A DNA stretch of 64,000 nucleotides from Parasitella parasitica NRRL 2501 (taxonomy: Eukaryota; Fungi; Mucoromycota): NCBI GenBank assembly GCA_025201805.1, contig MU619291.1, positions 64,451 through 128,450 of the forward strand. Reading direction: 5' to 3'. Position numbers and translations under genes: made by a program. Under the pieces are notes generated by a model. The model was given only the letters and a program-made list of their open reading frames with translations. It was not told the DNA's origin and made no database searches. Shown one piece after another: positions 5,092 to 64,000 of the stretch. How positions within the stretch are numbered: the stretch's first letter is position 1; each line of letters opens with the position of its first letter.

Positions 5092-5376
5092 AAGAACACA
5101 GCAAAATAAACACAATCCAGCGAGGAATAGAGTGTACAAATGCTTTGTTTGGTTTTGTAATTCCCATTCAAGTTTCGAATTTTTGAGAAGTCGGCGTTAA
5201 ATCAAGTATATCTCATTTTGAAAAACTAATTAAAAATATATAGAGAGCTTTAGAAAGATATAAAAAAATATGTGCGTATGCAACAAAGCGTGAAATAAAT
5301 GGTCATGTATTTTGATTTGAAATAAGAGCTCTTTCAACAGAGTAAATCATGTTGAAAGTCGGGCGAAATAGCTTGA
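5092..5376 (+). repeat. Dispersed ~285-bp repeat, copy 1 (left arm of a foldback)
   Basis: Near-identical to 49889-50172 (about six differences by eye); a diverged inverted copy lies at 5582-5790. Confidence 0.9.
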
Positions 5377-25831: not shown

Positions 25832-26971
25832 CTAGAAATCAGCATCTAAAGAAAAGTTGCGAACCTCCTTACTAGACATTACACCAGCACGTTGATAATC
25901 GGAAACGCGTTTCTCAAAGAAGTTGGTTTTTCCTTGAAGAGAGATCAACTCCATAAAATCAAACGGATTAGAGACATTGTAGTGCTTAGGGAAACCAAGT
26001 GATACCAGGAGACGATCGGCCACAAATCTAACGTATTGACACATCAACTTGTCATTCATACCAATCAAACGCACAGGAAGAGAATCATTAAAATAAGACT
26101 CCTCGATGTCAACAGCTTCAGTGATAATTTGAAGAACAGTTTCATGTGAAGGCTGATCAATCAAATGGTGAAACAAGAGGCAACCAAAATCAGCATGCAG
26201 ACCTTCATCACGAGTAATAAATTCATTCGAAAGAGTCAAGCCAGGCATCAAACCACGCTTCTTCAGCCAAAAAATAGAGGCAAAAGAACCAGAAAAGAAG
26301 ATACCCTCCACGGCAGCAAAAGCAACAATACGGACACCAAAAGATTGGTTTGATTCATTAGAAATCCACTTGAACGCCCAATTAGCTTTGTCCTTGATGA
26401 CTGGGATGGTTTCAATAGCATTAAACAAGAATTCTTTTTCAACGGGATCCTTGATATAAGTATCGATCAAGAGTGAGTACATTTCAGAGTGAATGTTCTC
26501 AATCATGATTTGGAAACCATAGAAACACTTTGCTTCTGCTACTTTGACCTCATCACAGAAATTTTTTACCAAGTTTTCATTGACAATACCATCAGAAGTA
26601 GCAAAGAAGGCCAAAACTCGAGAAATAAAGAATCGTTCATCATCATTTAGCCTTTCTTCCCAGTCAATTAAGTCCTTTGATAGATCAACTTCCTCAACTG
26701 TCCAAAAAGAGGCTTCAGCCTTCTTGTAAAATTCCCAAATCTAAATTATGCATTCAAATATGTTGCATTATATATATAATTTTATTCTGTGCTACGTGTT
26801 CAGACATACCTCATGGAATTTTACTGGAAAAAGACAGAAACGTCTGCTATTTTCCTTCAGAATGATTTCCTCTCCTGACTTCAAATCAACCTTCATCTCT
26901 GCCAAACGTTTCAAGATGGTTGCTCTTAAACCTTTGGTGGCAAGTTCAGATTGAGAATCGAATACTGTCAT
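25832..26971 (-). CDS. RNR2: Ribonucleotide reductase small subunit, copy A (intron 26741-26809)
   Basis: [20 protein letters not shown] (radical Tyr), [26 protein letters not shown]-terminal FSLDADF; GTATGT..TAG intron after FHE. Confidence 0.96.
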
Positions 26972-27741: not shown

Positions 27742-28812
27742 TTAAAAGTCGGCATCAAGTGTGAAGCTTCGGTCCTCTGTTGCATTCATAACACCAGCAC
27801 GTTGGTAATCAGAAACACGCTTTTCAAAGAAATTCGTCTTTCCTTGTAGGGAAATCAAATCCATGAAATCAAAGGGATTAGAAACATTATAGTGCTTGGG
27901 GAAACCAAGAGAAACCATCAGACGATCAGCGACAAATTCGACATATTGACACATCAATTCATCATTCATGCCAATCAGCCTGACAGGCAATGCTTCTTTG
28001 AAGAAGCTCTGCTCGATTTCGACGGCCTCAGTCAAAATCTGGAGAACAGTTTCATGGGAAGGTTGATTGATCATGTGGTGGAATAAGAGACAGCCGAAAT
28101 CAGCATGAAGACCTTCGTCACGAGTAATGAACTCGTTGGAAAGAGTCAATCCAGGCATCAAACCACGTTTTTTGAGCCAGAAAATAGAGGCGAACGAGCC
28201 TGAAAAAAAGACGCCTTCAATAATAGCAAAAGCACAGATACGAACGGCAAAAGGCTGTTTTGACTCGTTGGCGATCCATTTAAAAGCCCAATCAGCCTTG
28301 GTCTTGATTTGAGGAATGTTCTCTATGGCATTGAACAGGAATTCTTTTTCAACGGGATCCTTGATGTAGGTATCGATCAAAAGAGAGTACATTTCAGAAT
28401 GAATGTTCTCAATCATGATCTGAAAACCATAAAAGCATTTGGCCTCGCCAATCTTAACTTCATCGCAGAAGTTTGCTACTAAGTTTTCATTGACAATGCC
28501 ATCCGAAGTAGCAAAGAAAGCTAATACACGGCCTATAAAGAACCGCTCATCCTTGTTTAGCTTTTCTTCCCAGTCAATTACATCCTTGGATAAATCAACC
28601 TCCTCTACTGTCCAGAAAGAAGCTTCCGCCTTTTTGTAAAATTCCCATATTTCATGGTATTTGAGAGGGAAAAGGCAGAATCGGCGAGGGTTTTCCTTGA
28701 GTATAATTTCTTCTCCAGGTTCGACGTCTACCTTCATTTCGGTCAAGCGTTTCAAGATGGTTTGTCTTAATCCTTGCGCAGCAAGTTCTGATTTGGCATC
28801 AAATACAGTCAT
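27742..28812 (-). CDS. RNR2: Ribonucleotide reductase small subunit, copy B (intronless)
   Basis: Single 356-aa ORF with all diiron ligands, the radical Tyr and C-terminal FTLDADF. Confidence 0.97.
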
Positions 28813-34233: not shown

Positions 34234-34253
34234 NNNNNNNNNNNNNNNNNNNN
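34234..34253. other. Assembly gap (N run)
   Basis: Run of Ns between T-rich flanks. Confidence 0.99.
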
Positions 34254-34709
34254 TTTTTAAACCAGGAATGGTTTCATGTAGTAGTATGCATTGCAAGCAT
34301 ATGATGATGCAAAAAGTAAACAGCTTTTTTCATGTTTTGCTTTGGATTGTTGCTAAAAAATCTGCAATATTATCTTTGGTTTCGCATAAATTAAAGGTTA
34401 TATAGCTTTTTATATATCGACAGGGCTGGATGTATGCTAATGTATTCATTTTGATGTTGTTTGAATGTGAGCCGTGCTGCTTATGTGCCTTGGAAATAGA
34501 AATGATGGATAAAAGTGTGCACCAAAGATTGTGTAGCTTAATTAAATCAGATCTTCCTTGAACGAATGACCAAATCTATTGTATTGAGTGGTAATGTTAT
34601 TCCATTCCTCAGCAGAAGAGCTATCAAGGATATCGTCAACAATACCAACTCAACCAGAGAATCCAGCGCACATGCGCTTTCTTTCTGCATCGACATTGAC
34701 TTGGCTTTG

Positions 34710-34736
34710 TTAGAGCATCTCCAACGGAGATGCTAA
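34710..34736 (+). mobile_element. PIF/Harbinger-type terminal repeat (TTA + GAGCATCTCCAA) at the 3' end of the Fanzor element
   Basis: TTA|GAGCATCTCCAACGGAGATGCTAA; resembles Tourist/PIF termini and folds as a 9-bp hairpin. Confidence 0.65.
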
Positions 34737-34883
34737 TTTTACAAAATTTCCAAAAGAAAATTGGTGAGGAGATGATACTTTCTTTTTTTTTGGACAATTT
34801 TATTCACTTGTAATGGTGTATAGGATAAACCGAATACCCATGGCGTATCAAAGAGTAATATCAATGACATACAATGCTTGCAA

Positions 34884-36060
34884 TTATTCTTTTGATTCAG
34901 AACGCTGGAATGGTGAAAGACGATTGTCATTGTTTCTTGCTGCATGTAAAAATATGTTGAGGATGTTTTTTGCAGCCATTATATCGCGATTCCAAATAAT
35001 ATTATACAAGCGGTTTCTTGACACTGTAATACAGAATATACTCTTCGCTTTGCTGATCGTTGCACAACGTTTTCAACATTTCTTTTTTTGCAGTTGTTGC
35101 AGACTTGACTGGTGAGGTATTCGTCTACTATTTGGACTGTAACACCACGATTTTCTTTACATTTTTGAAGAGCTTTTATGATAGTCTTTGTAGGTCCAGA
35201 TCTTTTGCCTCTCATGGTAGGTGAAAATCTTCCATCTCCATAGGCAATGATGGTTTTATTTGCCTTAACTGATCCATCAAGTGGTGGAGGGCGGGAGTAA
35301 GAATTGTTGTTTCTCGTTGTTGTCTTCACATTGGTGGACGCACCCGAACGATATTTGATGCTATCATGAGTAAACACCTTGACTATTTCGCTGAAGGCTT
35401 TTTGCTTCTTTCTATAACATCTAAACTTTAATTTTGAAGACCTATTCCATTTAGCTAACACATTTTTAAAATATGTACAAGAGTTTGCTACACTTACCAA
35501 AGGCCACTGTTATAAAATTCATACATTGTATCGTAGGATTGTATACGCTTTCTGCAAGCAATCAAGAATTTTGAAACTTCTCCGGTTTTTAATGAATCCA
35601 GTTCTGTTATCATTCTATGAGTGTTTGTGTGCTTCGCTTGATGAATCTTTCGAATGTGAGCTGCATCATTAAACCCACACAAGTGATAATACTCTTTTTG
35701 ACTAAGTGATCCCACTCTACCAGCTTGGTCAACTATAGTAAAAACCGTGCTAATTCCAGGGTCTACCGCCTACACTTGGCACCCATTGTCAATATCTGTT
35801 TTCAGGTCAGGTGGCTTTACGGGAAGAGAGTCTTTCTTCTTTTTTGCTGTAATTCTAGAGAAGAGAAAAGACACTGAATAACCATCCGTGTAGATAACAT
35901 TCCTAATATAACTTGATAAGTTCTAAGGCATTACTAAATTAAAACTATATGAACTCACTTAAAGATCTTCTTTCCATTGTAGAGCTTATCTTTGGTTTTA
36001 AATCCAATTTTAGAAAAATCAAAAAGTTTCAAACAGTTGCTCTACATTTTTAGTTCCTGT
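34884..36060 (-). pseudogene. Intron-containing Fanzor1 nuclease pseudogene, family 2
   Basis: NVIYTDGYSVSFLF; RuvC-I V*AVDPG (TAG for W); LSQKEYYHLCGF; KLKFRCYRKKQKA; IIAYGDG; RuvC-II VDEYLTSQVCNNC; C..C then frameshift to IWNRDIMAAKNIL (RuvC-III); introns GTAAGT..TAG (~35442-35497) and GTGAGT..TAG (~35903-35958). Confidence 0.92.
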
Positions 36061-36705
36061 AGTAACTAAATCTTGTGCTCTTGATTAGAACTGGCTTCAT
36101 AACGTCCATGATCCAAGTCCGTTAAATCGCATTCATCGATAAAGAAACTCACTTCTTCTCCAAGTCTAAATAAATAGCAATCCTTCTATTCAAAACATGC
36201 TCTTACTACCTACGTGCATCAATAAAATCTGCTGAGAACTGAAAAATAGTTTGTGTCTAATCAAAGAATCGATTGCTCAGTAATTATGCCAAGATGTCCG
36301 AAAGTCCAGCTTGCTGCAAAATAAAAACATATCTATCATCTTTATTTGCTTGGAATGGTTTGAAGCAAGCATTTTTATCTAGTTTTTCCTGTTTCTCCTC
36401 AATACTCAATTTGTCAAACCTCATGCCTCCTTTATCAAGCAATAAAAAATCGATCGTGATAGCTTACGGCACAATTGCTTTATACAAAAGTAGCAGAATA
36501 TTTTTACTATACAGCGTTTCGTACATTTTGAGTCTCTATCCAAACTAATCGACAATGGTAACTGTTGATTGAAACGAACTTCAGCCATCATATTGAGTGA
36601 ACTTCTTTAAGCAAAAAAGTCACAAAAATTTTTTCGTATATCATACATTTGAAAGGATGTACTTCATTGCTCTCTCTCTCTTTCATATACTGTCTATTTT
36701 TGACC

Positions 36706-37140
36706 ATGAAGTACCTCGCCTCATACCTTCTTCTCGTTGCTGGTGGTAAGACTGCCCCTACCGCTGCTGATGTCAAGGCTCTCATGGCCTCCGTTGGTGT
36801 GGAAGCCGAGGAGGAACGTTTGAATTCTTTGATCTCTGCCCTTGAGGGTAAGAACGTTGATGAGGTATGCATCTTGTTTTGATAATATGAAAAGGTACCA
36901 ACATCTAGTATTCTATAGCTCACTGCTGAAGGTTTGGAGAAAATGGCATCCGTCCCTACTGGTGGTGCTGCCGCTGCTAGTGGTGGTGCTGCCGCCGCTT
37001 CTTCTGATGCTCCTGCTGCCGAACAAGCCGCCGAAGAGAAGGAAGAATCTGACGATGTAAGTTAACATTTAAAGCATCGCTTATGTGCAATTATAATAAT
37101 ACAAATTAAACAGGATATGGGTTTCGGTCTTTTCGATTAA
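36706..37140 (+). CDS. RPP2: 60S acidic ribosomal protein P2, 3 exons
   Basis: MKYLASYLLL..SVGVE..L..LISALEGK, Ala-rich hinge, EEKEESDD/DMGFGLFD*. Confidence 0.97.
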
Positions 37141-37569
37141 ACAATTTAATTTAAACATTGATTAATCACAAATAAATCGTCTGTCTTCTAAGTCCTTGCC
37201 GCAGAAAACGATAGCAAATGCAATATACTACATTTGGAAGTGATGAAGGCGCACGATCACTCTGAATTTTCATTAGCTCATTAAAAAGAAGTGGTCCCCG
37301 ATCATTCGCAACCTCAAACGTATGAATATCATCTTATTTAAGAAAAGATCATGCAATGAAATCGGCCATCAGATTCATGCTTCAGAAGCTTAACATTGCT
37401 GTGTATTTTGTCAAACCCCAGAATATCTGGAGAAAAAAAAAGAATAATTTACAATAGCAATGATGGCCATGGCTGTCTGCAGTTTGGCTTTTTGGACAAT
37501 CACCAAATATTATATGCAGTTCTGCTTTAGTTCCAGTTGTCGGTAATCTGAGGAAAATAAATCTATATA

Positions 37570-38046
37570 GTAACGGTATATCAAGCTAAATTCCGAAAGA
37601 AGAAACAGATGATTTTGGTTACTTTCTATAAACAATTTATAAGTGGGAATGTCACTTACCCAATAGTATTAAAAGGTCAAAGTCAAAGATGCAGCGCTCG
37701 ATTAATATTAAGTTATATCCACGTTTTATATTTCTTTACTAACCTTCAAAGAGTATTGCCTCCATCGAAAGGCGAGCCCAGTATCTGTTTTCTGTACAAA
37801 AAAGATAGGGCTAAATTGTTGAATTGTATGCGCTTGGCAGTGGTGGGGTTTGGGTCGAAGCAGGGAAAAGTTACTCCAAACAAAAGGCAACCAAGACCAG
37901 CAAGACCAATTGCAAGTGCTGAGACTTGGTCGCGGCACATTGTCTTGAAGGCATTGGGGCATTCTGAATTCAAGCAAAGAAATGAACCGGCTGTTCGCTG
38001 CATTTTGCCATTGAGAGCAGCCACAGGATGAGAAAGCTTGTGGAAG
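37570..38046 (-). mobile_element. Fanzor element 3' stub, family 3 copy 1 (last ~100 codons plus 176-nt 3' end)
   Basis: GSFLCLNSECP..MCRDQVSALAIGLAGL (second zinc-finger pair plus RuvC-III RD); 477 bp with 3 mismatches versus 63506-63982. Confidence 0.85.
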
Positions 38047-49888: not shown

Positions 49889-50172
49889 AAGAACACAGCA
49901 AAATAAACACAATCCAGCGAGGAATAGAGTGTATAAATGCTTTGTTTGGTTTTGTAATTCCCATTCAAGTTTCGAATTTTTGAGAAGTCGGCGTTAAACC
50001 AAGTATATCTCATTTTGAAAAACTAATTAAAAATATATAGAAGCTTTAGAAAGCTATAAAAAAATATGTGCGTATGCAACAAAGCGTGAAATAAATGGTC
50101 ATGTATTTTGATTTGAATTAAGAGCTCTTTCAACAGAGTAAATCATGTTGAAAGTCGGGTGAAATAGCTTGA
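49889..50172 (+). repeat. Dispersed ~285-bp repeat, copy 2
   Basis: Near-identical to 5092-5376. Confidence 0.9.
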
Positions 50173-63505: not shown

Positions 63506-64000
63506 GTAACGGTATATCAAGCTAAATTCCGAAAGAAGAAACAGATGATTTTGGTTACTTTCTATAAACAATTTATAAGTGGGAATGTCACTTACCCAAT
63601 AGTATTAAAAGGTCAAAGTCAAAGATGCAGCGCTCGATTGATATTGAGTTATCTCCACGTTTTATATTTCTTTACTAACCTTCAAAGAGTATTGCCTCCA
63701 TCGAAAGGCGAGCCCAGTATCTGTTTTCTGTACAAAAAAGATAGGGCTAAATTGTTGAATTGTATGCGCTTGGCAGTGGTGGGGTTTGGGTCGAAGCAGG
63801 GAAAAGTTACTCCAAACAAAAGGCAACCAAGACCAGCAAGACCAATTGCAAGTGCTGAGACTTGGTCGCGGCACATTGTCTTGAAGGCATTGGGGCATTC
63901 TGAATTCAAGCAAAGAAATGAACCGGCTGTTCGCTGCATTTTGCCATTGAGAGCAGCCACAGGATGAGAAAGCTTGTGGAAGCAGAAAACACACGTTTGC
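63506..64000 (-). mobile_element. Fanzor element 3' end, family 3 copy 2 (continues beyond the window)
   Basis: QTCVFCFHKLSHP..GSFLCLNSECP..CRDQVSALAI: both zinc-finger Cys pairs plus RuvC-III; the ORF is open to the window edge. Confidence 0.88.

Follow-up and report, generated by a model that had tools for sequence, protein, structure and literature searches.

Splicing of the non-coding tail in a Fanzor1 family carried by a Pong-type transposon of Parasitella parasitica

In the fungus Parasitella parasitica, the transcripts of one Fanzor1 family are spliced in their non-coding tail. A spliceosomal intron is removed after the stop codon, and a conserved core is joined to the last 20 nt of the TIR of the transposon that carries the gene. 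This transposon, a Fanzor1 element of 3.65 kb, is non-autonomous and is moved by a PIF/Harbinger transposase of the Pong type. The splicing itself was seen in RNA; the leading explanation, which we regard as probable, is that the spliced RNA functions as the Fanzor guide.

The window copy and its Fanzor1 family

The copy under study lies on the minus strand of the window, a stretch of 64,000 nt from contig MU619291.1 of strain NRRL 2501, with the gene of ribosomal protein P2 on one side and an unrelated gene of the host on the other. Protein matches of 92-98% likewise point to Parasitella parasitica, one of the Mucorales. It is a dead, 5'-truncated member of the family and, taken on its own, ordinary. 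The sequence 5' of 36064 is gone, which means that ~60% of the gene is lost and that the left TIR is missing. The features are as follows, in window coordinates.

35959 to 36064, minus strand: remnant of the long Fanzor1 coding exon, with the left break at 36064 and an 11-nt deletion at 36029
35903 to 35958, minus strand: spliceosomal intron A, 56 nt, GT-AG; joint found in RNA, position the same in relatives
35498 to 35902, minus strand: coding exon with the TDG motif, RuvC-I DPG (Asp 35763-35761) and a premature TAG (35772-35770)
35442 to 35497, minus strand: spliceosomal intron B, 56 nt, GT-AG; joint found in RNA
34884 to 35441, minus strand: last coding exon, with RuvC-II DEY (Glu 35122-35120), the zinc finger, a frameshift near 35003, RuvC-III NRD (Asp 34985-34983) and the stop codon (34886-34884)
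34844 to 34871, minus strand: 7-bp stem-loop, candidate SL1 of the omega RNA, with compensatory changes across species and one pair broken here
34808 to 34843, minus strand: remainder of the candidate scaffold exon (optional hairpin, UACAG, then the donor); CAA here, CAG or AAG elsewhere
34733 to 34807, minus strand: third spliceosomal intron, 75 nt, of the non-coding tail, with its donor from the Fanzor cassette and its TTAG acceptor from the Pong end; other copies splice it, and the donor of this one is mutated
34750 to 34751, minus strand: junction of the Fanzor cassette and the Pong right end, within the third intron
34713 to 34750, minus strand: Pong/Harbinger right end, with the TIR (34713-34736), a 9-bp palindrome (34714-34734) and the short last exon (34732-34713)
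34710 to 34712, minus strand: right copy of the TAA target-site duplication
34695 to 34709, minus strand: host flank, putative guide of ~15 nt, its start uncertain by 1 nt
34764 to 34823, plus strand: antisense-strand intron, GT-AG on the plus strand, found in RNA only; it overlaps the scaffold and the third intron

Apart from the 5' loss, the reading frame is interrupted by the TAG, where other copies read TGG, and by two frameshifts, one of them a +2 shift near 35003; an 11-nt deletion lies at 36029. An earlier note on this DNA had recorded the TAG and one frameshift, both of which are present, and had missed the deletion, the 5' loss and the mutated donor of the third intron. The donor of the third intron is also mutated, to CAA-GTGAAT in place of CAG-GTGAGT. 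Because of this mutation, and since all the contigs of RNA run X7 in this region carry the letters of other copies, transcription and splicing of the window copy itself are unsupported.

As is characteristic of Fanzor1, the RuvC triad is of the D-E-D kind, with the Glu shortly before a Cys4 zinc finger; the CxxC..C finger matches PF07282 (E 3e-5). The best structure matches of a profile were SpuFz1 and GtFz1 (E 3e-5), and the identification of a Fanzor with DPG, DEY, NRD and a zinc finger was right in all its parts. Searches of the PDB with single exons recovered no Fanzor; the profile alone did so. The relative at L059:641-3414 is an apparently intact four-exon Fanzor1 gene, open over 864 aa and 50-55% identical to the window exons. 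It is through this relative and the structure matches that the family is assigned to the large (600-900 aa), intron-bearing eukaryotic proteins that stand nearer to Fz1 than to TnpB or Fz2. The same gene stands beside Tc1-like remnants, and three donor-like sites are present in its tail. Among the 15 copies checked, no intact Fanzor was found, the 14 besides the window copy being all broken or partial. Spliced models were searched exon by exon, joined exons being used for the reading-frame check and RNA folding only, and a large protein search added the loci L086-L088 and little more. Relatives from other fungi share the positions of the coding introns, and RNA contigs of the family show the removal of both (run X7, in which host introns are spliced too). 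Fanzor1 proteins bind an RNA that reaches 14-15 nt into the flank, and their DNA cleavage is RNA-guided and TAM-dependent; the family protein may do the same.

SpuFz1, GtFz1 and PpFz1 (PMC10432273, PMC11423790) resemble the present family in the rearranged RuvC with its Glu just before the zinc finger, in an RNA that comes after the stop codon and before the right TIR, and in a first stem of 7 bp. PpFz1 comes from the same host species (PMC11423790). In contrast to these systems, the tail is spliced here, the copy is dead and the host element is Pong-type; PpFz1, moreover, is a separate family (no PDB match at E<=1, and a different RNA sequence).

Some features of the surroundings may also be recorded. 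The P2 gene, for a 60S acidic ribosomal protein, has an RNA contig that extends to 36000 (window 36000-37300) and touches the broken left end; transcription that diverges from the P2 promoter could continue into the remnant. At 34237-34253, ~460 nt past the element end, the assembly has a short gap (N). Further, the window holds a 477-nt repeat of 99.4% identity (37570-38046 and 63506-63982) that had no match to the seven proteins of the Fanzor1 family tried, a MITE-like, 285-nt inverted dispersed repeat of 98% with internal inverted arms (5092-5376 and 49889-50172), and an 864-nt tandem duplication of 80% (25877-26740 and 27787-28650).

The Pong-type host element

In the window copy, the element ends at 34713, which is 171 nt beyond the stop codon, and is followed by TAA; the 9-bp hairpin of the TIR folds at z -5.3. 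Tail, hairpin and TAA had all been noticed earlier, and the expectation that other copies would stop at the same point between TAA or TTA target sites was borne out by a search of the genome. The window copy gave 45 matches, mostly of 86-97% identity, and nearly all of them stop at the point that corresponds to 34713. The window contains the terminal 24-mer once (0/100 shuffles); the count for the genome is 56, while a control gives 0. The same TIR is present at the left end of many copies, 17 of which are two-ended; the window copy has the right end only. The fullest copy, of 3655 bp, carries the Fanzor gene only, in a broken form.

The flanks are TAA or TTA at 26/27 left ends and 30/34 right ends. 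The duplications match exactly in 11 of the 17 two-ended copies; four mix TAA with TTA, and two are mutated. The mixed flanks (L004, L010, L019 and L026) may reflect an exchange of ends between copies or mis-assembly. A TTAA target with a variable overlap of 2, 3 or 4 nt was considered and rejected, as most pairs are plain 3-bp duplications. No empty target site was seen; run X1 contains both junctions of the window copy.

A Harbinger transposase had been anticipated inside full copies, and a decayed one of the Pong type (a DDE transposase, PF04827/PF13359, E 6e-22 and 6e-21) is indeed present in L048, where the same TIRs enclose both it and the Fanzor element's final 245 nt. A second PF04827 transposase sits 0.9 kb from a Fanzor tail, and further copies are found on contigs C98, C49, C87 and C32. 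No intact transposase was found in the copies read. A search for ORF1/Myb-SANT led to broken ORF pieces on the opposite strand of L056, without a Pfam match. The PF13359 matches of the genome have no connection with these TIRs and were rejected as the partner, a role that falls to the PF04827 family.

The same TIRs also bound a Tourist-like MITE family of 590-640 bp, without Fanzor sequence (L044-L047, L050, L052 and L055). The existence of this family would allow an independent MITE to have inserted behind a Fanzor gene, but the alignment of copies refutes this reading and leaves it a negligible chance. The Fanzor tail runs continuously into the TIR in >25 copies at different loci, so that the earlier note was right to treat this TIR as the end of the Fanzor element itself. 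Many copies, moreover, have the left TIR 1.5-3.7 kb upstream, with matching duplications, and what the MITE has in common with the Fanzor element is limited to the TIRs, 111 nt at the left and the terminal 43 nt. From the TIRs, the flanks, the transposase and this sharing of the ends only, it follows that the Fanzor1 cassette lies within a Pong-type PIF/Harbinger element, and not that a MITE landed behind the gene.

The Pong clade of PIF/Harbinger, with its Tourist-like MITEs (PMC2836001), likewise has TIRs, 3-bp TAA/TTA duplications, a PF04827 transposase and derived MITEs. It differs in that a Fanzor1 cassette is carried here, and in that 4/17 copies here have one TAA and one TTA flank. That Fanzor1 occurs in many transposon types is already known, and a 2026 review names Harbinger among the Fanzor hosts, without detail. 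The only other Harbinger case found described in detail in the literature is MCi-5 of Mucor circinelloides (Bao and Jurka 2013, PMC3627910), likewise a Mucorales element with Fanzor1 and a Harbinger-type transposase. MCi-5, however, lacks TIRs, its duplications are of 6 bp, and its link to Harbinger was not settled, whereas TIRs, TWA sites and transposase agree here.

Conserved core and third intron of the non-coding tail

As in Fanzor1 elements, a conserved structured RNA lies after the stop codon and before the right end. Its 7-bp stem (SL1), with a conserved loop, is kept after the stop codon in relatives from other fungi. The earlier note had called for a covariance check of the 3' ends, and this came out in favour of a conserved stem: across ten sequences, 94% of cells are paired and 3/7 pairs are changed on both sides. 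None of 500 shuffles reaches this level and slid controls are lower; such shuffle counts are not probabilities, because the relatives are related sequences. An Rfam search of the tail gave no match. The known Fz1 RNAs are 75-150 nt long, have an SL1 of 7 bp at their start and take in the 3' duplication (PMC11423790, PMC13565253, PMC10432273).

The conservation stops at the UACAG motif, and a splice donor comes next. The donor directly follows the core in eight close relatives, and GTRAG within 120 nt of the stop codon was found at 13/22 foreign loci, where 4.0 were expected and the other strand gave 5, some of the loci being distant and not independent. The sequence past the donor is unconserved between relatives, and among the copies the length of the intron ranges from 39 to 80 nt.

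An intron running from 34807 to the TTAG at 34733 was predicted from the donor motif and then found in RNA run X7, as a 75-nt spliceosomal intron in the family's tail. Of the earlier claim of two spliceosomal introns, both were spliced in the family's RNA, while this third one had been overlooked. Run X7 carries the joint twice, once in the CAG form and once as a one-letter variant that corresponds to the AAG subfamily (seven or eight genomic copies). The intronless junction is absent from all 28 genomic copies read. That the GT-AG sites of the joint are identical in two subfamilies makes it unlikely that a deletion in the genome or a template switch produced it. The evidence for splicing consists of contigs from one RNA run, without strand or level; the tail joint is absent from three other runs, which show no intron joints. 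The spliced contigs extend to the TIR end and the duplication only, and unspliced contigs across the intron are also present. On the other strand, an antisense intron (34764-34823, plus) is deeper in run X7 than the sense joint; antisense transcripts could feed RNAi against the element.

In the spliced model, SL1, a middle hairpin and the TIR hairpin are formed, with ~85 nt up to the element end. The earlier note had taken the whole of 34713-34883 as the scaffold, with the TIR hairpin as its last stem and the guide beginning at the first base of TAA, which amounts to an unspliced RNA of ~170 nt plus guide. Such an RNA would agree with the 150 nt of the GtFz1 RNA, with the unspliced contigs that cover the intron, and with the folding of the unspliced region (z -1.8 to -3.5). 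Since 75 nt are spliced out of the family transcripts, however, the scaffold is probably not the whole 171 nt. The intron part is also of variable length and unconserved across species, and this model is therefore judged very unlikely. What does survive of it is the TIR hairpin, which is retained in the spliced RNA; it is nevertheless a feature of the Pong TIR, being found also on the Fanzor-free MITEs, and is imperfect (mismatch or bulge) in 11/23 right ends. As to the guide, published Fanzor scaffolds, those of solved complexes among them, include the 3' duplication (PMC13565253), so a start after the 3-nt duplication is the most likely, at 34709, or at 34710 if the mariner register were kept.

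Another reading regards the splicing as incidental or antagonistic. A short unspliced omega RNA would have its second stem across the donor and a fixed internal guide, and splicing of the mRNA tail would compete with it, as in IStrons. A 4-bp stem does span the donor in the unspliced fold, unspliced contigs exist, and the PpFz1 RNA made in yeast retains a donor-like motif. Yeast, however, may be unable to splice these introns. Further, a guide taken from within would have its match in the element itself and no means of tracking new insertion sites, the sequence after the donor is unconserved between relatives, and the AG stands at a fixed distance from the end. This reading is judged unlikely; the splicing of the tail in run X7 makes a fixed guide from within the element less probable.

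The published, yeast-defined PpFz1 omega RNA has a consensus donor, CAG-GUAAGC, ~12 nt after its first stem (PMC11423790 Table S3). As it works with this motif in place, an unspliced form can act as a scaffold in another family. [quoted passage not shown]

Exchange of the host element within the intron

The third intron is also the place at which the host element changes. A copy from Cokeromyces recurvatus shares 91% identity with the window copy as far as 34751, beyond which it has another end, ACTG followed by TA. In runs X8 and X11, from two other organisms, the cassette is ~97% identical, and its alignment breaks off, at 34751 and 34771, where it gives way to that same foreign end. These runs have no coverage of the neighbouring Parasitella genes, and the ribosomal protein gene is matched only in short pieces of ~88%. 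Record 22 of run X8 (3956 nt, over 34751-36064) is 97% identical, stands at ~5x background depth and lacks the TAG, the frameshifts and the donor mutation; it is probably a recently active mariner-ended family in another fungus. Five more distant relatives likewise end in ACTG-TA. We take these ends to be those of Tc1/mariner hosts, and their features fit: one of the relatives is bounded by TIRs of 67 nt whose flanks are of the TA type, and another is next to the helix-turn-helix remnant of a transposase.

An AG is found 10-12 nt before the end in all six mariner-ended relatives (~0.1 each by chance), and splicing is predicted for them as well. When it is modelled, UACAG pairs with the terminal ACUG and the TA duplication in 5/6 best folds, the best fold of L059 being the one without. 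The Pong end starts exactly where the similarity to these relatives stops. As this break, at 34751, lies inside the intron, it was the Pong end that supplied the new acceptor. The simplest history suggested by these sequences would be a horizontal spread of the mariner-ended cassette, followed by Pong capture in Parasitella.

The mechanism proposed is one in which a cassette from a Tc1/mariner-type host, moving by horizontal transfer among the Mucorales, would have been captured by a junction inside the intron, with the old donor paired to a new acceptor in the Pong TIR. The junction is observed, and its selective meaning is inferred. Since the old donor finds its acceptor in the Pong TIR, no redesign is needed for the scaffold to be linked anew to another transposon's end. 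Where the donor is intact, transcripts run through the right TIR, and the spliceosome removes an intron of 65-80 nt, joining the core of SL1 and UACAG to the last 20 nt of the TIR. The spliced scaffold, of ~85-88 nt, would end in a stem closed on the target duplication, and the ~15 nt of host flank after it would serve as the guide. Fanzor would then trim and bind this RNA. As in OMEGA homing, the complex may cut the empty site left by the precise excision that is known for Pong (PMC2836001), and repair from the sister chromatid or another nucleus may restore the element.

The cassette may instead be a passenger, whose guide worked in the mariner host and became useless after Pong capture, with the wrong TAM or last stem; it would then have spread by the Pong transposase, the use of TTAG being chance. 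All the copies read are broken, with no intact Fanzor or transposase among them, which favours this account. Many copies with internal deletions have spread without most of the gene, as have the Fanzor-free MITEs with the same TIR, and the frequent imperfection of the TIR hairpin points the same way. Against this, nearly all the deletion copies keep core, donor and acceptor, their deletions falling in the intron or the ORF, and the spliced product rebuilds the layout seen in relatives. On balance, the passenger account is rather unlikely, and a guide made by splicing is still preferred.

A broader reading, to which we give slightly under an even chance, is that Mucorales Fanzor1 guides are assembled by the spliceosome, with the donor of the core as a universal plug; the RNAs defined in yeast, that of PpFz1 included, may then be unspliced stand-ins. 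If this is true, the scaffold could be linked to whatever transposon end has an AG a few bases short of its terminus, and Fanzor1 could switch between mariner, Pong and other hosts. In the literature searched, whose scope left most subscription papers and Repbase outside, no description of a spliceosome-made or spliced Fanzor guide RNA was found. The parts are of known kinds, and what seems new is the way in which the guide RNA is made and re-linked to another transposon.

How a working guide is kept while Fanzor1 moves between transposon superfamilies, whose ends must suit their transposases, is an open question (PMC13565253, PMC10711439). A splice junction that removes the sub-terminal region offers a direct, testable answer to it, and this family records a swap at that very spot. 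The swap inside the intron may explain why Fanzor changes hosts so easily. Further, the Fanzor-Pong pairing is a clean one, as precise Pong excision leaves an empty site of the type that homing needs. If true, this would be a eukaryote-specific way of making a guide RNA, and it would bear on how the scaffold is defined for fungal Fanzor editing tools.
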